Below, piece by piece: positions 29,501 to 50,356 of a stretch of DNA of 58,364 nt (positions within the stretch are counted from its first letter, which is position 1; the number at the start of each line of letters is the position of its first letter). Location: assembly GCA_040357565.1 (NCBI GenBank), contig JBDODJ010000070.1; one strand, given 5' to 3'. Both the position numbers and the translations under genes were made by a program. Origin of the DNA: Cercozoa sp. M6MM. Taxonomy: Eukaryota; Protista; Endomyxa: Ascetosporea. The notes beneath the pieces were generated by a model. It saw only the letters and a program-made list of their open reading frames with translations, did not search any database and was not told the DNA's origin.

Positions 29501-30369
29501 ATTCAACCGCTGGGGCAACGCAGTGCGCAAGTCGCTTCTCTCCGAGTCCGATGTCAAGGTAGCCTTGCCTGTCTTTACTCATGTGTTCTTTTCTTAATTT
29601 GCGCACTCTGGCAGGAACGAGCCAAGGTGCTGCGCAAGTACATCGACGTTGGCTACGTACACTTTTTTGTTGTGTGGTGCTTGGAAACTACGCTTTGTTG
29701 TATTATTACAACGTGTGTGCAGCAACTGTACAAAATGCAAAACTTTGCCTCGTCTTTCGCCATCGTGGGCGCACTCAACGACGCGGCCGTGCAGCCGCGC
29801 CGACTTCGTTTGACGTATCTCCCAACTGTGTTTGCACTGTGATGGATTGACTGATGAGCTTTGGTTTAGTTGGGCCGAGTTGTCCAGTCGCACTCGCGCG
29901 CGTTTCGAGCAGCTCGAATCGCTTTTCTCGGCCAATAAGTCTCACGTAAAATCTCCTGTGTTCCTGTCCTTTGTTTCCTTGTTACCTGCTTCCTTGTCCA
30001 GGCCACGTTACGCGCAGCACAGGCCAGTGCGCTGCTGTCCAGCGAGCCATCGCTGCCGTTTGTTGGACTGTTCCTGAGCGATCTCACCTTTGCCTTCGAG
30101 GGCAATCCCGACTTTTTGCCGCGGCCCGAGTCGCAGGCCGACGAAGACTTGGACGACGAGGACTTGTCGGACGAGGAGACTGACGAAGGCGCCGATAACA
30201 CCGAGGCAGGCAACTCGGAAACGACGCAAACGACGCCTGCCGAATCGCAGCAGCCGCCGCAGCAGGAGGAAAAGTTTGTCAACTTTCACAAGTACTCCAT
30301 CGTGGCCTCCTGCATGGATCAGGTACAGCACGCGTCTTTCTGTTCCTTGCTTTGAAGTGTGCTCGACAC

Positions 30370-30431
<62 letters not shown>

Positions 30432-30666
30432 GGTCAAGAGGCACCAGCAGCGGCGATACAACTTCCAGCGCATCGACGTGTTGCACGACTTTATCGAGAG
30501 GTGCTTCTTCCTTTTGATGGGTGTGTCCTGGTGTGCATACCTGTCCTGTGCGCCTGGTTGTAGTCTGTGCGAGGCTGCCGATGGGTTGGACGGTGATGAC
30601 TTCTGGCATATGTCACAAAAGCTCGAGACCAAGGACATGCACCGCGAAGCTGGCCTACTGCAGTGA
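26584..30666 (+). CDS. RasGEF (REM + CDC25 domain) protein
   Basis: REM: YLKGITLRKLVER, LLIERF. CDC25: EMARQLSLRD, ERAKVLRKYI, MQNFASSFAIVGAL, LPFVGLFLSDLTFAFEGNPD, VNFHK. Confidence 0.9.
27165..28090 (+). repeat. (GAGTT)n-based microsatellite tracts in three RasGEF introns (~27165-27360, ~27520-27680, ~27950-28090)
   Basis: Seen directly. Confidence 0.9.
30371..30428. repeat. (CA)n microsatellite, intronic
   Basis: Seen directly. Confidence 0.95.
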
Positions 30667-31552: not shown

Positions 31553-32764
<1,212 letters not shown>

Positions 32765-33385: not shown

Positions 33386-33500
33386 GTCGTGGTCATCCAC
33401 TCCCGAACGCATCGCAGATTCAGTTCATCGTCCAGTGGCCGTTCACTCGCGACTGTCGTATGTGACGCCAGCGTAGGTGTGCATGTGAGCGACAGCAGTC

Positions 33501-36500
33501 TCAATTAGACGAGGCTTGGCTTCGAAGGCTTGCGAGATTTGGAGCGCGCCTCTGTTGCCACAGGAGACGAGAGCTGCAGGTAGAAAGCAAAAGAAATGGT
33601 TGCAAAGAAAAAACGGTACTCGTTGACGAAGATGATTCGCGCGAAAGCAACGTATTCGGGAAGGATGTCCTTTCCCGTGAGTGTCACTTCAATTTGTTTC
33701 TCTTCAAAGTCGCCACTCTCATCCGCACTCTCTTGCCTCACAGTGTGCTCAATTGTGCGCGTGTTGCCGCTCCTGGAGCACACCAACGGGATACATTCTG
33801 GGAGCATCAGTCCGGGGATGCATTCATTTACCTGCGTCGAATGCAGTCGCTGCGCAAGGCACTGTTGCGCGCCAAATATGCAACTTGTCGCGTGTTCTTT
33901 TTTCGTGTGAACAGCAACCTGTGTGCACTCAGAGCATGACACACAAGCAGAGCGAAAACACAGCGAATGTACTCAAACTCGTCGTTTTTGTGAGAGTTCT
34001 TTCGATCAAAACGCTTGGCGACGTTGCAGATGAAGCCGACAAGCAGAGCAGACGCCACGGCCTAACGTTGAACAAGATAGACAGAGACACAAAGCATTGA
34101 CAAAGAGTTACATCAGTCGCCGCGGAGCCATGGATGCCCATGGAGTTTGACCGCCCAAGTTTCAGTCGGTTGCAGAAGATTTCTAGAATTAACGCAGTCA
34201 GCATGTAGTATAAATGCACAAAGAACAGAAAGCAGACAGTACTGTTGAGTTGTTCTCGAATGTGGGCAGCTTCGCAAAGAGCCTAAACAGAACACAGTCG
34301 ATGTGACACAAACAACTCAGTTGCACGAGGAGAACGGCACAATGTGCGAAAGCGAGTTTCGGTTTGCGAATTCTTTTGCTCCCGCCTCACCAGCTTCGTT
34401 AGAAATCGAAAGCCACCTCTACAACAAGCACCAATTCGTATACCTGCAGATCATACTTGCAGATTGATACCTCGAAAACACGCAGCAAACGGAACACATC
34501 GCCGCCACCAGTGCCATCGCAAAACTCTTCGTGAAGCAGGCGTGCCTCCTGCACAGTTGAAAACAGTACAAATACACAAAGGACAAGAAGTGACTGGTTT
34601 CAACCTGTCGACGCGCAAAAGAGGGCGCTTCCAGCACTCTTCGCTTCGTACTTAGCAAGGCTGCGATCGACAAAACCTCACTCGAGCAAATGTTGTCTTC
34701 TAAGTTTTATATTGAGGGTAATTCAACATGACAGCCAGGAAATCAGAGACAACGTACGCGCAGTGAAGGAATACTCAAGCGCGGTCGCCAACTCGAGCGG
34801 CAACGGCACACGAGCCACGCGCATTCCCTGCAGTTAGTACAACATAAACACATAAACTCAGAGTAAAGCGGTAGTTGGGTACCCTTTGGGTCAGTTTGAA
34901 GCCTACGCGCTGACCCGAACGGGTTTGTTCAGCGGCTTCAACATCAGTGTTGTCATCGAACTTGATCAGGCCCAGTCGGTTCAGTTTCTTGAGTGCATGT
35001 TCTATGCCGAGCTCACTATTTTCCAATCTGGTCGAGAAGCAAATAAAAGTACCAAACGCATCTTTCGAGGGCAGCGTGAACCACGGGAAATCGCGAATCG
35101 GGTCCTTGTAGCTACCAGAACAAACAGAAAACATGAGAAGACAGCAGTAAAAAGGGAAGTATACCGCAGATGACGCACGCGAAGCAGTTGCAGCGAGATG
35201 TCATCGCACGCGAAAGCAGGGGGAGTTTGCTTGGACATTTCTGATTTGAGCAACACAAACGATGTACTGCAGGTACTATCACACGTGTAAATAAACTCGA
35301 CAGGGTCCAAATGAGCTACCCTCATGATACGACTTTCGCGTGTACAACGGCACATAAACACCTGTCGACACACGCGCGGTGCGGCCTCTTCACATTGCAA
35401 ACACCACCCGTTGCACGAAAACAATGAAAACACAGATTACAATTGACGAATCAAAGTACCTGCGCTGGTCGGCAGATGCACGCGAGATCGGCCCAGTCTG
35501 CAAAGCAGCGATGCCGGCATCAAAGCAAAAACTTGAGCGTTTTGACAGTCCGGCATCGACCACAAATCGCACATTCGGGACCTACATATGACACGTTTTT
35601 TTATTTCTAAGATCAAAAGCAATGAAAGCCCTATTACCGTGAGACTCGTCTCGGCAACGTTAGTGCTGATGATGATACGACGGACAAAAGGTGCGTCCTT
35701 GTCCTGTGTGAATTGATGTCTACACTCATGTACGTGAAAGGTGGAAAGTACTTGCGGCGACGTGATTCGTTCGTGCTCTTCGACAGTTTGCTGCGCGTGA
35801 AACGGCAGCACCTGTGCAAAAACAAACAATATGAACAACTGTGATACAGTACAAAAATGTCCGACCTCTGCATGCTCACATCTGATGTCCTCCAGCATAC
35901 GGCGCAGCAGGGAGACGCACAATGCGATGTCGGCCTTGCCAGTGAGAAAGACGAGGATGTTGCCGCGCGTGTCTTCCGCACTGTAGTGTCTGCACACCAA
36001 AGTGTCACCTTGCACTAAATCACGACTCCCAGGACAACACAACGTGCAATACCGATGCAGCATCAAAGCAGCGAAAGTGGCGCGTGCTACATAGTGCGTT
36101 TTCATGTGCTGTCTCTGAGAACAGAGAGAGAAGTATCTAATGAAGCGAGAGCGTGTGCATTGGCAGTTACGTTTACCTGCAGCCAATCGGCCAACTCCCA
36201 GTGCTCATGCACATTGTACCGTCGCTGAACTACACATCACGCGTGCCAAACGCTGGCGAAACAATAACCAAAGCCTACGAGACATAAGCGACAACGAGTC
36301 CACGGAGATCTCTGGTGCATTCAGCTTCAAAAACCTCGTGATTTCTTTGCCGTTCAGTGTGGCCGACTGTTGAAAAGCAATGTCAGAGGAACTGAGAAGA
36401 ATTGAGATTTGGGGTACCATAAGAACAACGCGTAGTTCCGGGCGTCTTGCCATGACCCTTAAAAGGTTGCCTGCATGCCCACAGTACACAGCACTCAAGC

Positions 36501-38545
36501 GACATCGCTATCTAAACTACCGATGAGCACATCCGTGTTGAAAGATCGTTCGTGGATCTCATCCACAATGATGATGTCTACACAACCAGAGTGATTGTGC
36601 TCACCATGGGCTATGTATCGCCATGTGCCATACCCCACTTTCGCAGTAGAGTGTCACGTGTCATCTCAGCCACCAACGTGCCGTCAGTCAGGTAAACGAT
36701 GCGCGCTGTCGACGGCACATTGCGATCAAACCGGACGCTGTAGCCCTGTGTTCAAAGTACTATCAAAAGTAATAAGTAGAACGAAGAAAATTACCACGAG
36801 CGACGGGTCATCGACCACATTTCGACGCACGTGTCCAGCCAGGTCCTTGGCCGCGACACGACGCGGTTGTGTCACTGCAATCTTCTACGCAAGCACGCGT
36901 GACTGACCTCGACAGCGCACTCTTTGTACAGATGCGTACCTGGCCCTCTCCAAGACACGCAGAATTCAGTAGCATTCGCGGAACTTCGGTCGACTTGCCG
37001 CTGGCAGTCGGCGCCTCCACAACCGTCTGTGGCACGTGCAGTGTTGACTACTTCAACAGAAAAACGAAGAATAAGTACCACTTGGTTGGACTTGACCATC
37101 TCAAGCATCTTGCGTTGGATATCCTCCCTCTTCAGTGGCAGTTCTGTCCCAGACCAATCAAATCACATAGATACAACAAAGTGCAGTTTCGCTCACCTTC
37201 AATTTCGTCATCGGACAGTTCCAGTCGTGGCAGACTTGAGATGTCATCATTGACAGTGTATGTCGAAAAGTGCGACGCCAACAGCGTTAACACTTGCGTT
37301 TTGCAATCCTCGTACATGCGATCGGCATGCTAAAGCAATCAAAGTCACATACTGATAGACACATCAACACACGAAGCCTCAACGTACTAACACCGCCGCC
37401 TCTTGCGCAGCCGCATTGAGGGGACCTGTTTTCTTCTCGGGTTCGTACATGTCTAAATTGAACAGCATTGTAAAAGCAAAACAGAAATGCAAAATGGAAG
37501 TGCTAAACAATATACCTTGCTGAAGCAGGCGTTGATCGCCAAAGCGCTGAGTTTCGTCGACACTCAAAATCAGCATCTGCAAAGTAAAACTGGCTCACAT
37601 AACTAACGATGACAGTGAAAGAAAACCACCGACCTCATCGAGTCGCGAGTCGTATGGCAGTTTTTGTGGCACAACAGGCGTTCGTCTCAGTTCACTTTGT
37701 GCCTCCTCGCGCAATTCCAGTTGGCAGCTTTGGGCCACACAAAAATACAAAGTGCCAGAGAGGGCAATAGATGTTTAAAAAACGCCTACCGAGTTTCTTT
37801 AATCGCCGCAAAAAGGCGTCGTGCGTCATCTTCCGATACCTCGTCTACCATGTTTACATTTAGAAGATACCAATCGAGTAAAGGAGTGCAAACGAAGCTA
37901 CCGTCATCTTCCAGCATCTCCTCAATTTCTTCAGTGCCGTATGACAGGAGATCCGACACGTTGCTGACGAAGTTATCTTCCAGCAGTTCCCGCAGCGACA
38001 CAAGGTCAAAGTGTTGCACAAACTCGTTCAACGTAGTTTCTTCACTGCGTGAATCACAACAAGCATGCCACTGTTTAACAAACACAGACTGGCATACAAA
38101 TTAACGATACCGCATGAGACCGACACCGTCGTGAATCTTTGATTTCTTGAACTGACGACGATGCGGCGGAAAACTCTCATCGCTTGCAATGTCTGAACAG
38201 ACGCTGCGAACAGATCGAAGCTGCTCCGCCTGCAATCCAAGTGCTTATAGTCTGCAAGCTGGTCGCATGAAATCCATATCTCATATATACCATCCACTCG
38301 TTAAAGCCATCGACGAGTGAGTTCAGGCTTTTGTGCAGCTTCCCGAGCAGAGTTTGCGTATCGCGGCGTGTCCCAGAAGCGTTAAGGATCCAGTTGGGCA
38401 ATTCACTGCGGAAATAAAACGAAAAGAAAGAATACATGATAGAAACAGTACCTCAACTTCTCCTCAATGCTTCTCCAGTCCTTCAACTTAACATCGAGTC
38501 CTTTGGCTGCGTTTTAAACCCGATCAAAAACAATGACTGGCAGAA

Positions 38546-38577
<32 letters not shown>

Positions 38578-38587
38578 ATACACACAC

Positions 38588-38683
<96 letters not shown>

Positions 38684-41600
38684 ACGGCGTCGATACCAGG
38701 CCGCGAAAGCAGTGTTTTCGTTGCCACAGCGAGTCGCAGGGCCTCTTGGCTGCCGATGCCATCGCAAGCCGCCACCCATTTCTGCAGAAAACTAGCCTAA
38801 GCCACGTGTGGCTGACAAAAACGAAAGCAGAACACACCCAAACATTGGCAGTCAGTGCGAGGCGATCGTGTGTGTCGCCACAAAAGTGTTCCACCTCAGC
38901 TTTCATTCTTCAAACAATCAATATGCTTGATAGTAATAACAAGCAGTGCTGTGTCTGTACCGTTCTTCTTCAGTCCATTGCTTGTCATCGGCAAAATCAT
39001 CGATCACATCAGTCACTGAAGGTAGTTCCACGCGCGACAGATTCTCTTCCGGCAGCAGCGACTCCTCAAGCAGGACCTAATATTTAGCATGTCCAAAGAC
39101 GTCAAGGTAGAAACCAAAGGCAGCAGGTCATACAAGGAACTCGTCGCCGTCCAAATCACCGCTCAGAGCGTGCGCGAGCGAGCGACGTCCACGCGACGGA
39201 AACACTAGCACTGGTGCATTCACCTGACTGCAAAAACACGATAACCTCGCCAAAGCAAATAGAAATAAAGCTATTGTACCCATTCTGGAACATGCGCTCC
39301 AGCTCTTCGTTGTGCACACTGCGCACGATCGTTGCGTCGTTCTACAAAGCGAATTATGACAGTTGACTCATTCCTACAAAACGACGGAAGTACCGGAGTT
39401 TGAGCCGGATTGCGCAGCAACAGCACTCGCTCACGTGCGATGGTCCGGAGATCACCTCTCGGTCCCGATATCGTGCTAAAAGAAGAAAACCATGCCACGA
39501 ACTGGGTCTTGTTTGTATAGCGCTAGATCAATCTACCGCAAGAAACACGTTCCCTCTTCCAGAACACCAAGTGGGTCACATACTGCCTTGATTCGGCAAC
39601 TCGGGAAGGGCACGTGAACGCGGAATCTTTTAAACTGCCGAAGCTCGTCCATTACGCGAGCGTGCACTTCCGAAAAGAAAATGTTCTGCGCCTTGAGAGC
39701 GTTCCAATCTGCTTAAACACACAACAACAATTTAGACTATAGCAGTCGAGTTTCCACCGTCCGCGTGGACCAGCTGGCGGCGCGGTTTACGTGCTGAAAT
39801 GTACCATCAGCTTGCACAGCATCAAGAAGCTCAGGCGAGAACGTGTGCACATTGCGCGAACACTGGGGGAAGGGGCGAAAACACTCAATCCGAAACGCAC
39901 AACCGTTTGTCATGGTTCATACCAAATAGTCGAACGGAATCTTTCCGAGCAGTCTTTGTGAAGATTCGGCGTCCAAATAGAGCGCCTGCACAATTTTGAG
40001 ATGCTCACAAAGCTGCAAAACGCAGAGGGCACCTTAGTCAGCGTAATCTGCTCCTCAGCGTATTTAAACACGAGTTTCTCCAGTTGGTTTTCACACACAC
40101 CGGCGTGCTATCAAAAGATAGGGTGACGAGTGCGGCAAAAAGTGGATAATTGAAGCACCTTGAGCAGCATTATAGCCTCGTGATTGATGAAGGCAGGTCG
40201 AGCCACGGTCGGACGAAGCATCTGGACCTCTACGACACTGCTCCTGTTCCAACAAAGCACTAGTACAGGCGCATTGACAAACATTGTGAGAGCAAACATA
40301 CGCTGCAGGTGCAGATCCTGGGTACTTGAGCATCGAGGCAGGCAAGAACAAGTCAGCTTGCTGCTTGTCATCTATGTGCCAATGCTGGCGAAATAAGGCG
40401 TCCTCAGTGTCAATGACAACGAGCATGCCTTTGTACGCATTCGAACAGCGCACTTGCATCGACGCTTTAGATACCAAAAAAGTTTGTGGGGTCAACAAAC
40501 ACGGAGTGTATAAGAGTCCATACAACATCGATTGAGAAACTTGGCATTTTGCGCGTCTTTTGCCGCGATTTCGCTGAGTACCTTGCGCGAAATGAAGCCG
40601 CAGCCGTCACCTGCGATTTTTCAAGCTTAGGTTCCACATGCAACAAATCCTTTGTTACTGAAAGACTCGTTTAATTCGTCGACGTGAACATCGGGAATGT
40701 CGACTTTTATCGGCGACTAATTTACAATGTAAAACTGGTTGGAGTACTTGTGAAGAAACACTCACATAAATGACAAAACAAAGTTACGATGGGCAGCGAA
40801 ACTGTCTGCGAAAAGGCTTGCCAGAGACGTTTTTGAACACGCAGCGGCGGCACTCTGTTAAACACATTTTAAAAATACCAATAAACAAGAGACTAAACTA
40901 CGAAGGGTCCATCCTGCAAATGTTCTGCCGCATCGACTTTGTGTCGAGACACGAGAGATAGACGCCATCGGTATCTCCAGTGCTGCGCCAGACACAAGAT
41001 GAGACTGATCCGACCGCCGAGTAAATTAAATCCAGTGTACACGAGGAGGAAGTTGAAAGTGTGCTGGCACAGAGTGACGCCATCATCTTGAAGTGTGCGC
41101 AGCAACACCTTTCGCAACTCAGGCGGCAGCTTGCCTTCCAGCTCATTGCCCATGCCTGCAGGCAGCACTTCCTAGAAGTACTACACACCGACAGGAGATA
41201 AAGCACAACGTACGATGCACAACCTTGAGCAACATAAAGTTTTGAGCGCCATAGCGTCGCAGTGTGTCTGACGACGAGTGCGGTTTCAGTACCAGACGCA
41301 CTCGAGTCGAGCTGACTTGAAGCAGCTTGAGCCACACGTCGCACGACTGTGTCAGCAGCGTCTTGGCTCCACCAACCGGTGACGTCTGTGACCACAGAGA
41401 ACGTTAACGCATGGCATGAGGCACAATCAAAGTACCCGCGACAGGGCCTGGTCATAGAGTTCGCGGACGCAGTTAAGGCCGCGTCGGTCGCCTGGATCGT
41501 CCTCCAATGCCAAGAACTGAAGTGCCGCCAGTTTCCTGTCTGTCTCTTCCTCTACAAGCAACAGTTCAAACAAACATACATCATCGACGCAGACAGTATC

Positions 41601-42962
41601 GTTCTCAGCCTACCGTTACACATGTCGAGCGCGAAGGTTGTCGCTCCGCCCATCAAGTCCTCGAAAGTGATCTACGCGATACTTACCTCTCAAACTTGCG
41701 GACAAAATAAGTGGACTAAATTTACGTGATTGCAAGCGCTTGCAATGGACAACAAAGCGAAAGCAGTGTCGAGGCTTCTAATTCCCCTGGCGTGGTGCTT
41801 AAGAACATCAAAAAATGGAAGCACGTTTGATGCTCTGGACAAGCAAATGATAATTCAAAGTCACATCTAAAGAAAGATCCGATCATTTACCGCAGTGATC
41901 TCAGAATGGCGCGATCTTGTTCCTTTGTCACTTGTGTCGAATGAACAGCTTCGTCGTCCTGTTGTTATATTTAAATTTTTATTTACAAACCGCAAGGTAA
42001 ATTACAACTTACCAAGTTGAGACAACGAAGTTTCGTTTTCAGTTCAATCGCGATGTTGTTGAACGCAGTTTCGTCGCTACACACACGCAGCTCACGAAAA
42101 GAAAACAATAAATTTGCAAAGACTCACTCAAACTCGAAGTAGATAATTGAAGCGTATTCAAGTGCAAAGAAGAAGCGGCGCCTCGAGTAGCAAAGGTGAT
42201 CAGCGCAGAAATTGTTGGAGTCGAGTGCACGGGCGTCCGCCGGCCTTAACAGCTCGGTGACTGACGGTTGAGCAATGTCAGACGTGTCTCCGTGCCGACT
42301 CATTCGCAGCACGTCGAAAGGAAGATTTGTTTTCACTCGAATTCGCTTGCCACGTGAATCAAGTTTGGTTGTGCCACAAACATCCTGTAGTTTTAGTCGA
42401 AGCACGTATCTCTCCGTCTCGGTTCCTGGACACAGAAGCCGTCCAGAGCCAACAAGAAGATTCATTTGTCAAAGAAGCAAAGTACCGCACTCGGCCGGAA
42501 CAGCGAACTCAGTGCACAAGTAGGTAAAGCTGTGTTTCTTGCGGATTCCAACGCGACCAATCGTCTTAAATCGTTCAAAGTCGCTTGTCTACCAGTAGCG
42601 CAAGCGACAGAATTTAGACAGCCCAGTGTTTGCTTTAGCAATTTTCGGCAAGCCTCACCAAGCCACACGAAGCGAAATGCAAAGTCGCCCGATTTGCAAG
42701 CGCATCGTCTCTGCGACGTTGCAAATCCTCGATCCTTCATTTTCGCCAAACATCCAAAAACACGAAAACCAATGATGCTAGAAGTACTGCTCGCGACGGC
42801 TGGCTAGCATTTTCAATCAGTCGAGTGTGCTGGACAGTATGAAGGTTTAAAAAGGCTGTATGCCAGCTTTTCGCGGGGTGAAAGTCTGGTTCCACTTCAG
42901 TCTTCTGGTTCCGGTACGGGAGCGATGGTCACTTTTGTACCCAGTAAATTAACCGAATCCAT
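33501..42962 (-). CDS. Cellular (RNAi-type) RNA-dependent RNA polymerase fused to a C-terminal DEAH/RHA-family helicase (HA2 + OB-fold-like tail)
   Basis: RdRP motifs in order: KRLWQAFSQT, DGCGFIS, MQVRCSNAYKGML, PASMLKY, PAFINHEAIMLL, LLRNPAQTP, LVFPSRGRRSLAHALSGDLDGDEF (DLDGD at 39143-39157), LLGKLH. Helicase motifs: APTASGKS (I), TQPRRVAA (Ia), DEIHER (II, 36552-36563), SAT (III), ILVFLTG (IV), ISTNVAETSLT|VPNVRFVVDAG (V), QRRGRTAR (VI). The single-gene fusion and both ends are inferred. Confidence 0.8.
38546..38686. repeat. (CA)n microsatellite in an RdRP intron
   Basis: Seen directly. Confidence 0.95.
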
Positions 42963-43007
42963 CGTGTGGAAGCGCTGAAATACTTGGTGTGAGTGCGGAG
43001 GCTGTTT

Positions 43008-46000
43008 ATGGATCGTGGCAATTCCCGCGGTTTGCTTTTTTTTGCTGTTGTGTTGCAGTGCGATTGTGTTTTTGCAGGCACGTCGTTGTTTTTCAACGCG
43101 AACGATGTGGAGCAGCACATGGGTACGTACAATCTACACTGCGCTCGATGGCTGGTTACATTACTCTGCTCCGTCGCGACTCCAGTGGACGAAGCCGTGC
43201 GCGAAAGTACTCACGACACTGACAAGAGACGCCGAGGCAGGAGTCGCCGCTTGACGCGGCAACAGCCGCAACAAGCCTCTGTGGCTTCGGAAGAGTCCTC
43301 CGAACCTAAACGTCATCGTCAGCGTCAGCGTCGCAACAAGCAGCGCACCAAGAAACAAGTTTCCGGTGACGATTCTTCCGTTGCGAAAAGCGACACCTCG
43401 AATCGGTCAAGTCACTCGAGCGACGCCGCTTTTGGTAAAAACAAGCGCGCTGGTGGACCAAAAAAAGCCCGCGATTCGAACAAGGCTCAGCACGCTAAAG
43501 CGAAGCGAGGCAAGGGCAAGCCCACTGCTGACGATGTTGTGGACACAAACTCATTTCTGGTCGCTCCAAAAATTCGCAATCTCGTGCGTTTTCGTGTTTC
43601 CTATGAACCCGAGATCTCGGCCAAGGCCAAGCGCCTATCCAAGCGTCTTTTGTGTGCGTACGTTTTCCTGACTCATTATCTATACTAAATCCTTTACTCC
43701 GTTTCAGGGCTCGCGAGCGACTCGAAGTGGACTGCGACATTCCGCGCGGAAGTCTGAACCGCGTTTCGTTCTTCGACGTTGACAACCCGGCCTTGCTCGT
43801 GGTACTCCTTCGTTGCTTTGTCCTGTGACTTTTGTGGTTGAAGCGGGAACTTTAGGCGCGTGACGGTGAGTTCAAAGTGCTGGAGGGTGACTACGAGTAC
43901 GAAATCACACTGCGCCGTCCCCGAGGTGCTACAGAGGCGACTCAGGGCGAAAACGACTCGAAACAAAACGAGGAAGAATCGCTGCCGCGTCTTGTGTCGC
44001 TTCACTTCGCCGATGTGATCAGTTTCGCCGATCTCCCGATTCGCTCGCAGAAGCGCATCGTTGAGCGCAGCATCGAACAGCGACTTCGCGACGCAAGTAT
44101 CTTCCCTTTCGTTTGCTGTCGATACTCAAAAACAGGCGTGGCGTTTCTCTCAGATTTTGTGGCGCTTCACAACTGCTTCCTGCCTCCTGACCGCGAGCCG
44201 ATTATTATGGTGAGAACTTTGCTTGGGTGTGACGTGAAAGCTGACGTACAGTGTAACTTTTTGCTTTCAGGCAAAGGAGCAGATGCGAATTCAGCGTTGC
44301 GTGCAGCGTACACTTTGAACAACGTGAGTTTTGGTTTCGAAACTGCTTGGTGTTCAGTCGACACGATGCACATTCCGCGCGACCGTGTCGTGTTTTCTGA
44401 GTATAATTTACTGTTTTTTAGTTTAATAAAGTGTGTTCAGAACATTTTTCCGCTGTCAGAGACGAACGCGAAATCGAAGAAATTACGAGAGACCAATCAC
44501 ACGTCATTGTTGCAACCGTACCATTAAACCTCTCACTTCTACAAACAATTGAAGCAATATCAAACAATACACAGGTGCGTCCGACGTACAAGGTCTTTGA
44601 GAAGGACACGTTGGGCGCGAAGTACCTCGCGATCGAACGCGATGTACGAGACAACAAATCGTTGTCTCCGAGGGACAAGTATTATGATCTTTTCTTTCTA
44701 CCACGTCGGTACCTTTTGTTATTTTGAAGGAAACGCGAAGTGCTGCGTCGCATGCGACTGCTCGTAAAGGATCGTCGCGCACTCGTAGAATATTCGGGCC
44801 GCATCGGTGCACCCTCGATTCTCTCTAGCCCAGAAGGATTTACCCTCGCCCCGTGTGTACTTTGTTAGAGCGCCTGAGTGGCGTGGAAGAGAAGATTTCG
44901 CACAAGTCGAAGCAAGAGTTTTCTTCGAAGGTGGGACATGTCACTTGGCATCAGAGGGACTTGCCAAGAAGTGCTTATTTTAGGGCCGCGGACCGCGCGA
45001 GATGACGTACGCCGAATACTTCGCTAAGCGCTACGGCTACAGGTGCTTTAACAAGCAGGACAAGCACATGGTCAGTGTGCTCGACGCACGTGGTCGGCGT
45101 TCCTACTTCCCACCTTCTGCGTACTCTACCCCCAACCCCCGTTGCTCTTTTACCGCTTTACCCCTTATTCCCTTACCCGTAGACTGCACCTGACGGCATC
45201 GTTCGACAACAAATCGCGCTCGATGCGTTCTGTGATGAACGAGCTGCGAGCGAAACCCTACAAGGACGCTGCTGTATCTTAACTGTTCTTCTACACTCTT
45301 GTTTGTCTTCATTCCTCTCTTCTTTATTCCTCTCTTCTTTATTCCTCTCTTCTTTATTCCTCTCTTCATTATTCCTCTCTTCTTTATTCTCTCTTCTTTA
45401 TTCCTTTCTTCTAGGAAGTGAAAGCCGTGGTGCGCAAGGTGCGCGGCTCGTCGTTGCTGCTTGTGTCGGAGTCCGATGCGCCTGTGCGTGTAACTCACCT
45501 GTCTGTTTCGCTTGTAGCGATACTGTTGTTATTCTCCGTTGAATGCAGATTCGTTTGCGCAAGATCGATCTGCAGAAGCGTCACTTTTTCGAGCACATCC
45601 CACCGCGCAGTCGCAGGTGACCTTACATCAAATGGTTTCACTTGCTTAAAGAATCTCTATCTCTGTAGTACGAGTCCGGAGAGTGCCAAGAAAATCCAAC
45701 CAATGAAACTGATGCGCATGAAGAGTGACTCAGGTACTTTAGGATACCTTTAGTGCTCGTCCGCATTTACCCCTCCCCTGCAGGTGCCTACGCGACGGAT
45801 TGCGAGCCAATGACTGACGAGAAGTTTCGATTCGTCGCACTCCTGCCATCCAAGCGTACGTTCCTTCTCGACATCGTATTTTTCGCCACTTACCCCTCAT
45901 GCAGGGTTCGACGAGAACGCCGAAAAACTGCAGCGCAAGATCGCGCGTGTGTCGTCTCTATTGCTGCTGCAGTGCGTGCAGTACGACATCGCACATGCCA

Positions 46001-47603
46001 CTAGTGAAAGAGACGGCGACGAGTACTTGGACAGCTTGCTAAGTCAGACACGTGCCAAGTTCGCCGACGGTGATGACACACGTGTTGCTCTGCTTGTCGT
46101 GCTGCCATCGGCCAAACTATCGCAGTACGCGCAGCGCAACTCGCTTTTCAAGGCACGTCTCACCGAACGCATTCGCGATCGACTAGGTACCGCTCTAACT
46201 TCGTGTGTGTCTGTGTGTCTGTGTGTCTGTGTGTCTGTGTCTGTGTCTGTGTCTGTGTCTGTGTGTGTGTCTGTGTGACTGTGTGCTGTGTCTGTGTCTG
46301 TGTCTGTGTCTGTGTCTGTGCGTTTGTTAAAGGTGGATGCATTGTATATTCTGTACAGACGGCGTCTGGTGCCAGCAGTTTGCCCTCCAGGAAAACGCTC
46401 TCGGTTCGCGTTTGAACAAAGTTCTCGCTGACCTTATGGTAGACTCCGTTTTTTTTTAAACACACAATGCGATGCAATATGGTTCAACAGGCCAAGGGTG
46501 CCGTTGTTCGCTATGGCTTTGCTCCTTGGTAGGCACCTCTCTGTTTGCATTGACGTAGGGTCTATACCGAGGTGCTTATATTGCAGTGTGCGAGGAGGTG
46601 TGAATTCCGTGATTGTGGGACTGTCTCTTTTCAAAAACAAAAACACGTCGGCGCGCTCGGTCTACTGCTACGACACGGTGTCTCACCGCGTGCTGAACGA
46701 AGTCGCTACCCACGACAGCGATGTGCTTGGTATCCAGCTCGCAGTTGTAGTGTTGCGGATTCCTGGCAAGTCTGTGTTTCAAGTAGAGTTCGACGAGCGC
46801 TCGGTGATGCAGGTGGCTCGCTTCGTTGGCAAGTTTAACCCGAACTGCGGCACTGTGTTTGTCCTTCGTGGCACTGATCAGCACGTACTCTGTCTCTTCT
46901 TCCATGTGGACACACCTAACACACTTTTATGCAGGCCATCCACACCACTGAAGTTCGTCTGCTGAAGGAGAAACTGCGTGCACACGCCCCAAATGCGTAC
47001 GGCAACACTCTCCTTCTGTGCCATGTGTTTGCGACGATTTTTTGTGCACAGGAAACTTGTGTTTGTGCGCGCGTCCTTCGGTTCGCTGCGTTTCTGGCGA
47101 CCGGAAACGGAACATTTCGTCGATGATGGCGTTGCCGTGCCAGGCATCGAGCCACGTACTGGTAAACTGAGGCCTCGCTTTCAACATCAACACAGTGTTG
47201 ACGATAGAATACGCTGATTTACACTTCCTGCAGACGTGCAAGTCTCCACAGCACTCATGCTCAACGGCAAGCTCAGCGAATACGCCGTCGAATACGACGA
47301 CAATGACGACACGGCGAAGACGAGCGAACAAGACTTGGAGTCGCTTCTTTATGTAAATCGCCCTTCTTGACCTGTTGTGCTCTCTTCAATTGTTGCGTGT
47401 TGCAGGCGCTTGCTCACCTGCGTTACCCTACTTACCGAAGCGTACAGCTGCCAGCGCCTCTGTTCACGGTATTCCCGCACTCCCCTCAAGGAAATTGCTT
47501 TGTGGGTGAGATTATAAATGACTGGCGTGACGAGTAGGCACTGCGCTACGCCACGCAGTACGCCGAGCACCGCAACTTGCTCGGTCTGGGCAATGATGAC
47601 TGA
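43008..47603 (+). CDS. Divergent Argonaute/Piwi-family protein (N, PAZ, MID, PIWI), predicted slicer-inactive
   Basis: Basic disordered N-tail, then VDTNSFLV..VRFRVSYEP (N domain). PAZ: MTYAEYFAKRYGYRC...YFPP. MID: LLVVLPS...VWCQQF...DLM|AKG. PIWI C-terminus: LAHLRYPTYRSVQLPAPLFT|ALRYA (cf. LCHLY..W...RVPAPCQYAHKLA). Confidence 0.75.
45310..45405 (+). repeat. Intronic ~15-bp tandem repeat (ATTCCTCTCTTCTTT) x~6
   Basis: Seen directly. Confidence 0.9.
46203..46321 (+). repeat. (TGTGTC)n microsatellite in an Argonaute intron
   Basis: Seen directly. Confidence 0.9.
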
Positions 47604-47883
47604 TCATGAGCCTCGGTCCAGCGCAGTGCAACACCTGCCCGTGCCGTCATGCTTTTTCGCTGGATACCGGACTGCCAGTGCTTAAAACTGAAGTACAAGT
47701 CGAGTACAGGCAGTCGATTCGTGCATTAAACTATGCTCTTTAATGTACGCGGCGATATCAAGACGATATCAAGACGTAAGACGAACGAAACTGACGGAAA
47801 CTGAAGTATGCTATGCTACGGATGACATTCAAGTTCCCCCCGTATACACGGCCATTTGACTTGGCTTGATCATACAGTCTGGC

Positions 47884-50356
47884 TCAAGCATCGATAACGT
47901 AAACGAGCGCGATGTGGTCAGGCTCCTGCGTGACCGGGTGTCGCTCCAGTCGCATCGCGAGGTCCGGCCGCTCTTGCACGAGCTCGCGCACGATCTGCCG
48001 ACGCGAGAGGCGCCACTGACCGGTAGGAGTCCGCACGGCGACACCGTGCCACGGCGTGAGCCAGGCATCCCTAGACGACATCATGTGCATGCCTGCAAGC
48101 ACACAGAAGGTTACACATGCCATGCACCAATACAACAATACAACACACGCACGCAAAGCGAACAAACAAACCCAGTTTGGCAGCAGGGTTGCCAGGACGC
48201 TGCGGGTGGATCGACAGACGCACAGCGTGCGGCAAAGCACGTCGAAGCTGTATCATTGGGCGTATCATAAAACGTAAACGATTGAGATGTGCAAAAATCG
48301 AAAGCACTAAGCGACAGAAGATAGACGCACCAGTTCGCCCCAAGCACGGCTACGACGCAGAATTTGCCAGGCAGCTTTGCTCGTGATTTTCTTGTGCTTA
48401 TTGAGCGAAATAGCCGGTTGGCTCAACACGCCTGCCGCAGCGAAACTTTCACAATGACTAAGTTGAAAATTTAAAAATAAAATACCACTGTTCTGCTCCT
48501 CGTCCGACATCTGCTTGATAGTCGGGTAGGCCTGCACGCACGATACGATAACCAACATTCATAAGATGCCAAGTTAAACTGATTTATGCAGACATGAGGG
48601 TACAGGCACGAGATCGATGCGCATGAAACGGTGCAGGCCATTGAAAAGTGCCTCAACGTCGACATCCTTAGCAGCCAACGCCTTGACATCATCCGGCTGT
48701 CCGCCAAAAACGTGCAGTAGTCTGTGTCGCAGCTTGTCACCTGGTCAACACAATTTGTGAAACTTTCTCGTTGTAAAATACGAAAAAATAAAAACCCTCA
48801 GCGCAAAGAGCGTCGGTCGCTTCATCGTTTGTGTGCTGCACGAGCGCCGTGTGCAGCGGAATACCTTGATCGCACACCACCTTGACTGTCGACACACAGA
48901 ACAAAAAAGTCAAGAAACGCGGAATCAACAGAAAAGCACAAAAAACTGAGAACCTGCGCGCAGACGAGTGAGGTGACCCTCAGGGAACTGATGCAACTCG
49001 GCACGCACGCCGACTTCACTGTTGGGACTCTCGTCCGCCTGAACAAGAAACAAAGTTGTCAAAACGACAGTGTAAAAGCAAATAAAGACACCTCTCGAAC
49101 ACGTAGGCGCTCTGAGTCGGTGAGAAGGCTCGTCCACGGAAAGTCTTCGAGAGAGAACCAGCTCAGCTCTCTCGTGGCATCGATTTCGTGGAGCATTTTT
49201 TGGAGGCCTTTGGAGTAGGCCAGAATGTCCTCATCCACGCAATCGACTGAGCAAAGCACACGACATGATTTACATTGTTAAGAGTTAAATCTCGGGCATA
49301 CTGTTGCCGAAAACGCGACCGTCGGAAGCGATGACGATGTGAGCGCCGGGAGTGTACAGTTCCCTCCTACACAAAGAATGAATTGAATGCACTTCAAGCA
49401 TTCTGATGCAAACAAAGGCACCTGATGAAGCGACAGACATCGCGAAGAAAAGCGAGACAGAGTCGCTCGGCCTGATCCGGTACGACACCTAAGACCTTGT
49501 CGCGCGTATTGACAGATTTGCTTGGAAAAGAAGGCATCGTCATAATCTACATTAGCGTTGATACGTTAGCATAACAGCAGAATAAAAAGTGAAGTACAAT
49601 GGGAGCATTGGCGTCCACGAATTCACAAATTCGCGCGAGTTGAAGCGGCTCGCTGTCGACATCGACTTCAGCCGAAATCCTGCAAAGGTCAGACAAAATG
49701 ACACAAATCAGCTGAAGTAGAACATTGATTTATACAGTTCCAAGTCGTCATCCAGACGAAGTGTCGTGTCTCGTTTACCTTTGCTGTCTGTGGCAATGCA
49801 CTGCGGCGTTCTTCGGAAGTGCAACTGCACACTCAAGGATAATTTTCTTTGATTAAACTTACAAGAAACAAACAAATACCAACAATTCGAGAATGCGTCT
49901 CGAAACGTCAGTTTCCCTACGACCAGAGAGTTAACTACTGAGCCGGTTCTTTGACAGAAACAACGTACTTCAACTTGATCGACGAAAGCAGACTGAGGTT
50001 AACATTCAGCTAAACATACAAAACCACAGACAGGAGAAACGCACCTCAGCGACGAAGGCACATGCAAGTTGTTGACATCGAAGTCGGAGTCAGCGGGTTC
50101 CTGCTCGTCCTCACCGAGCGGCAGCGGAATCTTCAGCGCGTCTTCCATCTGCTCGGTCGACAGAACCATGAAGGGCTTTAAACAGTCGAAACTGAAAACC
50201 AGCGAAAGCAAAAGCCTTTGGCAAAATAAGAAAGAACGAGTCACTGGAACTGCGACTGACGATCAGAAAAAACACCTCATTCGCACATTCGCACGTGAGG
50301 GTTGATTCTCGTAGCCCTCATCCCTTCCCTTAAAAGCCCAAAGATTCTCAGCATGG
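47884..50356 (-). CDS. Hypothetical multi-exon protein
   Basis: Many minus-strand exon-like segments bounded by GT-AG introns (STEQMEDALKIPLPLGEDEQEP, VDEDILAYSKGLQKMLHEID, RQIVRELVQERPDLAMRLE..VYVIDA*). No family recognised; start approximate. Confidence 0.55.

Follow-up and report, generated by a model that had tools for sequence, protein, structure and literature searches.

Locus description

Contig JBDODJ010000070.1 of Cercozoa sp. M6MM, now Lemnamoeba sinaloensis, carries two adjacent, divergently transcribed genes whose sequences suggest a compact RNA-silencing unit. One encodes a cellular RNA-dependent RNA polymerase (RdRP) that most probably continues, within the same polypeptide, into a helicase of the DEAH/RHA type; the other encodes a very divergent Argonaute-like protein that probably cannot slice. 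The window analyzed is the entire contig, 58,364 nucleotides long. The positions of the two genes and of the spacer between them are as follows.

33443..42810, minus strand: RdRP-DEAH helicase coding sequence, 63 exons, 1896 aa; exact map of the public model
42811..43007: spacer between the divergent start codons, 197 bp, from the sequence and both gene models
43008..47603, plus strand: Argonaute-like gene, own model, 29 exons, 945 aa

L. sinaloensis, a marine amoeba, is amphizoic and belongs to the Apofilosa (Rhizaria). Its genome has a size of 23.6 Mb and about 9,000 genes (published gene counts). The genome is very compact: a gene has about 13 introns, which average 82 nt in length and are GT-AG in 99.5% of cases, neighboring genes are separated by a median of 162 bp, and 84% of the sequence is genic. 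The genome also carries an exceptional load of AC:GT microsatellites, which are abundant (PMC13746701). The published gene models were produced with funannotate, with transcriptome reads used for training and updating (PMC11069148, PMC13746701). The published genome papers on L. sinaloensis make no mention of RNA interference (RNAi), Argonaute, Dicer or RdRP.

Gene arrangement

The RdRP-helicase gene and the Argonaute-like gene are adjacent and stand head to head. An original prediction, made from the letters of the window, had described them as immediate divergent neighbors, and the 197 bp between the start codons bear this out. It had placed the second gene at 43008-47603 on the plus strand, and the same start and stop are found in the strongly coding model presented below. 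An RdRP and DEAH-helicase sequence on the minus strand had also been correctly recognized; its proposed left end at 33501 lies inside the gene, in the last exon, and the real end is at 33443. With one RdRP, a few Argonaute-like genes and about 9,000 genes in the genome, the chance of finding an Argonaute gene as the immediate neighbor of the RdRP gene is below 0.001 by our own arithmetic. The adjacency is thus real and unlikely to have arisen by chance.

Orientation alone had been called weak evidence, and this caution is sharpened by the layout of the genome: a head-to-head spacer of 197 bp is the norm where the median intergenic distance is 162 bp and 84% of the sequence is genic, and it therefore says nothing on co-regulation (PMC13746701). 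By default, genes of this genome adjoin one another over short spacers, which counts against reading the pair as a unit, and head-to-head pairs are common in the window. Both genes might accordingly be real silencing genes that are adjacent through ordinary packing, possibly serving separate pathways or acting at separate times. This explanation accounts for the spacer and is supported by the published gene density (PMC13746701), but chance would make an RdRP and an Argonaute gene immediate neighbors in fewer than 1 of 1,000 genomes, and packing as the whole explanation is considered somewhat unlikely.

RdRP-helicase gene

The minus-strand gene corresponds to public model P0001 (MES1910227.1, locus tag MHM6MM_002862), which is labelled only "hypothetical protein" in Cercozoa sp. 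M6MM. P0001 was the one strong match to the RdRP-exon query among 1.84 billion representative proteins. All 62 of its introns are GT-AG; their lengths are 46-96 nt, save one of 190 nt that contains a (GT)n repeat. The parts of the coding sequence are listed below.

38330..41289, minus strand: cellular (eukaryote-type) RdRP domain, aa 338-917 (Pfam PF05183)
39143..39157, minus strand: RdRP catalytic loop DLDGD, aa 776-780 (regular expression on the mapped model)
37198..38329, minus strand: linker, aa 918-1153 (236 aa), exons 29-36; no homologue found
34005..37197, minus strand: DEAH/RHA helicase region, aa 1154-1770 (phmmer against PDB; Pfam DEAD and Helicase_C)
36991-37014, minus strand: helicase motif I, A-x4-GKS
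36858-36872, minus strand: helicase motif Ia, TQPRR
36552-36563, minus strand: helicase motif II, DEIH
36358-36366, minus strand: helicase motif III, SAT
35938-35949, minus strand: helicase motif IV, FLTG
35644-35664, minus strand: helicase motif V, TNVAETS
35372-35467, minus strand: helicase motif VI, QRRGRTAR
33443..34004, minus strand: C-terminal tail, aa 1771-1896, at the place where an OB-like domain would be expected in a DEAH/RHA helicase

The P0001 protein matches the RdRP profile PF05183 over nearly its whole length (E 1e-54, 186.7 bits, profile positions 11-580 of 582), and the exon with the DLDGD loop reaches 23.9-25.9 bits against this profile by itself. The loop is intact and conforms to the pattern D-x-D-G-D. 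On this domain and motif evidence the gene is that of a cellular RdRP of the RDR / QDE-1 family. It is single-copy, as no second RdRP match was obtained in the same genome at the search sensitivity used.

Pfam places DEAD at aa 1161-1319 and Helicase_C at aa 1380-1506 of P0001, and all eight helicase motifs (I, Ia, Ib, II-VI) are present, motif Ib being TDG. In phmmer searches of the PDB, residues 93-664 of Prp43 align with aa 1155-1769 (E 7e-64), across the two RecA domains, the winged helix and the ratchet and into the first part of the OB domain; a DHX35 orthologue aligns with about aa 1155-1775 (E 2e-64) and HrpA with aa 1156-1656 (E 5e-63). The matches to DHX35, Prp43, HrpA, Prp16, Prp2 and Prp22 together span E values of about 1e-64 to 1e-56. 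Judged by these alignments the helicase is of the DEAH/RHA type within superfamily 2 (SF2). As the DLDGD loop and the full set of helicase motifs are present, both enzymes look active.

The region shares its core motifs with the spliceosomal and ribosome-biogenesis helicases Prp43/DHX15, DHX35, Prp16, Prp2 and Prp22 and with bacterial HrpA, and can be aligned with them through the RecA1, RecA2, winged-helix and ratchet regions, but it is only about 30% identical to them, equally so for Prp43, DHX35, HrpA and the other DEAH relatives. A point against the favored interpretation of the locus is that the Pfam profiles HA2 (HA2_N) and OB_NTP_bind found no match in P0001 or in the six frames of the window. 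In contrast, at least three other DEAH loci of the same genome have a clear OB domain (58-80 bits); a fourth match is weak. Set against these loci, the RdRP-linked helicase is therefore an extra, divergent DEAH copy. In a helicase tree it forms a very long branch that falls neither within the bacterial HrpA group nor within the sampled eukaryotic DEAH group, and the tree is silent on its origin.

One gene or two

The original prediction had spoken of an RdRP-DEAH fusion. Both domains do occur in one public model, and it speaks for this model that the published annotation drew on transcriptome reads (PMC11069148, PMC13746701); the fusion itself is drawn from that model together with an analysis of codon usage, splice sites and base composition, according to which RdRP and helicase are most probably one polypeptide. 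For the linker, a codon table derived from the remainder of the gene gave a log-odds score of 0.59 per codon in frame; its other two frames gave 0.10 and -0.16, and introns gave -0.61. The linker thus codes as strongly as the recognized domains (0.45-0.53 per codon). The splice scores of most linker introns exceed the 95th percentile for background GT..AG pairs. The weakest join consists of three elements.

37728-37789, minus strand: intron 32
37634-37727, minus strand: exon 33
37577-37633, minus strand: intron 33

At this join the annotation pipeline might have merged two genes of the same strand, an RdRP of about 1036 aa and a DEAH helicase of about 829 aa. The splice score of intron 32 is 6.3, the 81st percentile of random GT..AG pairs and hence at background level; read-through meets a stop after a single codon, at 37788, and exon 34 opens with an ATG (37576). 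These features weigh against a single gene, since the stop could end the RdRP and the ATG could open the helicase, leaving a spacer of 211 nt, not far from the 162 bp that form the median distance between genes here (PMC13746701). Out of frame, exon 33 has a fairly high score as well (0.52, against 0.77 in frame), and within the size range searched no other organism showed an RdRP-DEAH fusion. On the other side, introns 32 and 33 have the composition and length of introns (T 0.40 and 0.44, GC 0.42, 62 and 57 nt, which is typical), and exon 33 between them is exon-like (T 0.16, GC 0.54), so that composition alternates across the weakest join as expected; true gene flanks in this genome are not T-rich (T 0.21-0.23). 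Exon 33 moreover lies inside an open frame of 59 codons with a positive coding score, and the acceptor of intron 33 is strong. The codon, splice and composition signals of the linker thus favor a single gene, and a merger of two genes is judged unlikely.

Occurrence of the RdRP-DEAH architecture

The protein similarity search covered proteins of 1043-3318 aa, and within this range no orthologue with an RdRP followed by a C-terminal DEAH/RHA helicase was found. This counts against the fusion in that it is left without comparative support. With the RdRP region, only four other proteins of comparable length matched. The closest RdRP domains, at 32-35% identity, are those of three public ENA proteins of about 2600 aa (P0003-P0005), in which an N-terminal DEAD/ResIII helicase is followed by the RdRP and a weak nucleotidyltransferase-like tail (P0003: helicase aa 161-593, RdRP aa 1039-1633). 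The helicase region gave 768 DEAH/HrpA matches, with an RdRP in none of the 120 matches listed; the top match comes from the foraminifer Elphidium and is a DEAH helicase of the ordinary kind. With P0001 as query, a metagenome scan gave no match. The order of RdRP, then DEAH/RHA helicase at the C-terminus, thus seems to be new within the size range searched.

As a separate observation, the tail of P0003-P0005 has an MTPAP-like match of 22 bits, below the cut-off, and these proteins resemble the three subunits of the fission-yeast RNA-directed RNA polymerase complex (RDRC) in a single chain.

Fusions of a helicase with an RdRP are known from Dictyostelium (RrpA-C), peronosporomycete oomycetes (RDR1), Hydra and Nematostella, and likewise join a cellular RdRP and an SF2 helicase in one polypeptide (PMC4791657). 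There, however, the helicase is N-terminal and Dicer-related (DEAD/ResIII), whereas here it is C-terminal and of the DEAH/RHA type; P0001 does not have the Dictyostelium/oomycete-type order of helicase, then RdRP. The different family and the different order point to an independent fusion event with another kind of helicase.

Argonaute-like gene

The plus-strand gene was modeled with a dynamic-programming gene finder trained on the neighboring RdRP-helicase gene. All 28 introns are GT-AG, with a median length of 56 nt, and the model is clearly coding, with a codon log-odds of 0.65 in frame and of only 0.15 and 0.10 in the other two frames. The following parts were distinguished downstream of a first stretch of about 175 aa that is very basic (lysine plus arginine 25%).

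44984..45120, plus strand: putative PAZ-domain exon (Pfam PAZ, profile positions 60-97 of 123)
45905..46186, plus strand: putative MID exon, by position and by-eye resemblance only
46587..46884, plus strand: putative N-terminal PIWI part, two exons (glocal alignment to the comparator L087)
47234..47603, plus strand: C-terminal PIWI block (exons 47234-47352, 47406-47468 and 47538-47603)

The first large exon (43186-43583, plus strand) is rich in Lys, Arg, Gln and Ser, with runs that resemble nuclear-localization signals; its sole echo in Pfam is a weak SR-25 match.

The comparator L087 is a canonical eukaryote-type Argonaute open reading frame of 792 aa (303.9 bits with Pfam Piwi), intron-less, which was obtained from a Piwi scan of prokaryote genomes. 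It is located at L087:1474-3849 (G068:C2:21228-23603, minus strand) on a contig of a prokaryotic metagenome-assembled genome (MAG), and its motifs GADVSH, YRDG and YYAH are intact. A search of 300 genomes of the same class did not find it there, so that its presence in the MAG is probably due to contamination or transfer.

Two signals identify the protein as Argonaute-like. The PAZ exon scores 17.7-18.1 bits (E 0.003), below the Pfam cut-off of 28.8 bits, and no second PAZ-like site was found in the 23.6 Mb of the genome. In the C-terminal PIWI block, exon 47406-47468 matches the C-terminal PIWI motif of L087 (BLASTP, E 0.005). The joined model scores 10.5 bits against L087 with phmmer (E 6e-6 for a one-sequence search, Z=1) and gives a Smith-Waterman z of 6.9 overall and of 11.8 for the C-terminal PIWI block, a value reached in 0 of 1000 shuffles.

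Several results weigh against an Argonaute. No match to Pfam Piwi was obtained exon by exon or in a six-frame scan of the genome. Searches of the PDB (phmmer) and the ESM Atlas with the Argonaute exons and the PIWI frame were blank or uninformative, and no ArgoMid-type signal was seen. The N-terminal PIWI part aligns only marginally with L087 (z 2.1, 43 of 1000 shuffles), and the MID and PAZ parts of the joined model are not significant in the pairwise comparison. The 5'-phosphate pocket of the MID domain (Y-K-Q-K) was placed in exon 45905-46186 and the next exon by by-eye resemblance only. The putative MID exon found no support in Pfam, the PDB or the ESM Atlas and was predicted by single-sequence AlphaFold as all-helical at low confidence (pLDDT, the predicted local distance difference test, 64); in the glocal alignment it is colinear with the MID of L087, non-significantly. 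A protein search with the PIWI frame gave no homologue within a length range that stops short of the annotated Argonaute protein, and exon searches for an Argonaute paralogue in the same genome returned self matches only. The reach of such searches is limited: the HMMER filters conceal matches below about 11 bits, so that short exons of a divergent domain would go undetected, and Pfam gave almost nothing on raw open frames because the exons are only 20-130 aa long.

An unrelated protein with a PAZ and a PIWI-like C-terminus by chance resemblance would account for the sub-threshold PAZ score, the blank Piwi profile in the whole genome, the non-significant MID and N-terminal PIWI comparisons and the uninformative exon-level PDB and Atlas searches, but it is very improbable, as two independent signals, the sole PAZ-like site of the genome and a significantly aligned PIWI block, occur in one gene with the order and distance expected of an Argonaute, and this gene adjoins the only RdRP. 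The plus-strand gene is thus taken to encode a very divergent Argonaute-like protein with a basic N-terminus, a putative PAZ and a PIWI C-terminal block, an identification that is partly shown by these comparisons. Of the original call of an Argonaute/Piwi protein, the PIWI C-terminal block stands by its alignment to L087, while PAZ stays below its cut-off and Pfam Piwi is silent. Among the profiles that had been proposed for the two genes, RdRP, DEAD and Helicase_C gave matches, HA2, OB_NTP_bind and Piwi gave none, and PAZ was sub-threshold.

Slicer residues

In the glocal alignment, GADVSH of L087 is opposite GLSLF in the Argonaute-like model, YRDG is opposite VLRG, and PAP-x-YYAH is opposite PAPLFTAL. 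The first D of the catalytic tetrad is accordingly replaced by S, the third D by R/G and the fourth H by L, and the best alignment holds no DEDH/DEDD tetrad. The motifs RDG and D[VIL][ST]H occur 0 times in any forward frame of 46300-47650. Of these positions only the fourth lies in the statistically supported part of the alignment; the first and third depend on the part with z 2.1, which is a point against the loss of slicing. The earlier description as slicer-dead is therefore kept in a softer form, with RDG and D-x-[ST]-H absent and one tetrad position statistically supported: the Argonaute-like protein probably cannot slice.

Neighboring features

31561-32761, plus strand: actin gene, upstream, two genes away from the pair; a short part of its sequence is masked
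47884-50356, minus strand: gene tail-to-tail with the Argonaute-like gene, without a long open frame
38510-38700, 46190-46350 and 30330-30450: long (GT)n/(AC)n microsatellites in introns of the RdRP gene, the Argonaute gene and a neighbor gene, respectively

No further silencing gene was recognized among the immediate neighbors of the pair. The intronic microsatellites fit the published AC:GT repeat load of the genome.

A single RNase III-like site was found in the genome, on another contig (G000:C320:9980-10372; L004:4980-5372, minus strand). It has the signature ERLEYLGDAV and matches Ribonucleas_3_3 with 21.6 bits, below the cut-off; the frame upstream may hold a degenerate second RNase III-like half. 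One weak signature is too little to call a Dicer or Drosha-like gene. With an RNase III-like locus elsewhere in the genome, independence from Dicer or Drosha is not indicated either way.

Comparison with known silencing systems

The fission-yeast RDRC consists of Rdp1, Hrr1 and Cid12, and the nematode RdRPs RRF-1 and EGO-1 work with the helicase DRH-3. As in these systems, the RdRP of L. sinaloensis would be paired with an RNA helicase for the synthesis of small or double-stranded RNA. There, however, polymerase and helicase are separate polypeptides, with helicases from other families, and no nucleotidyltransferase partner as in RDRC was seen at the L. sinaloensis locus.

Nematode WAGOs have PAZ and PIWI domains without the catalytic residues, and the Argonaute-like protein, with its putative PAZ and PIWI parts, probably resembles them. 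The hallmark of the WAGOs is loading with 5'-triphosphate RdRP products. The WAGO combination is also found in Tg-AGO of Toxoplasma gondii, which has PAZ and PIWI without catalytic residues and coexists with a single RdRP-like gene (PMC2877743). Tg-AGO was found by standard domain searches, whereas the L. sinaloensis protein is largely missed by them. A coccidian source of the window, suggested by the comparable gene set of Toxoplasma, was rejected once the accession pointed to a rhizarian amoeba.

Plasmodiophora brassicae, a member of the same supergroup, is the only rhizarian with studied RNAi (PMC13547706). It has two canonical slicer-type Argonautes in tandem and no RdRP; no canonical Dicer was recognized, and a Drosha-like enzyme makes the small RNAs (PMC13547706). 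Argonaute genes are thus found in both organisms, but L. sinaloensis has an RdRP and a divergent, probably non-slicing Argonaute.

Insights into RNA silencing

The interpretation favored here is that two core RNA-silencing genes stand head to head, a probable RdRP-DEAH fusion and an apparently non-cleaving Argonaute, which would work by the mechanism outlined below. Taken as a whole it is considered reasonably probable, and functional coupling of the RdRP-helicase and the Argonaute-like protein is plausible, as is the original reading as an amplification-and-effector unit, in which WAGO-like loading of RdRP products may occur. With target transcripts as templates, the RdRP would make antisense RNA. 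The helicase joined to it, working 3' to 5', would clear or thread the template or release the product, a role that is performed in trans by Hrr1 in RDRC and by DRH-3 for the nematode RdRPs. The non-cleaving Argonaute would bind the resulting small RNAs and silence through recruited factors, not by slicing. The common upstream region of 197 bp would permit joint expression, in a layout that is the norm of the genome.

A bolder version of this mechanism is doubtful. In it, the RdRP, its spliceosome-type DEAH helicase and the neighboring non-cleaving Argonaute would form a self-contained, Dicer-free small-RNA machine, the polymerase being docked by its Prp43/DHX35-like helicase on stalled or discarded splicing complexes. 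If this were true, badly spliced transcripts, such as those of transposons or of foreign origin, would serve as templates of silencing RNAs; the genes of this organism have about 13 introns each. Spliceosome-coupled RNAi is known in Cryptococcus, and the L. sinaloensis protein would then be its single-protein counterpart.

The main novelty of the locus is the RdRP-DEAH/RHA architecture, a predicted fusion in a poorly studied supergroup. It suggests a new answer to the recurring need of RdRPs for a helicase partner, with a helicase of the DEAH/RHA type and not of the Dicer type. If the fusion is real, it would be a ready-made construct for asking what a helicase contributes to an RdRP, and the adjacent, probably non-slicing Argonaute is the natural candidate for its effector. 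RNA silencing in Rhizaria is almost unexplored, and the locus shows that another rhizarian retains an RdRP.

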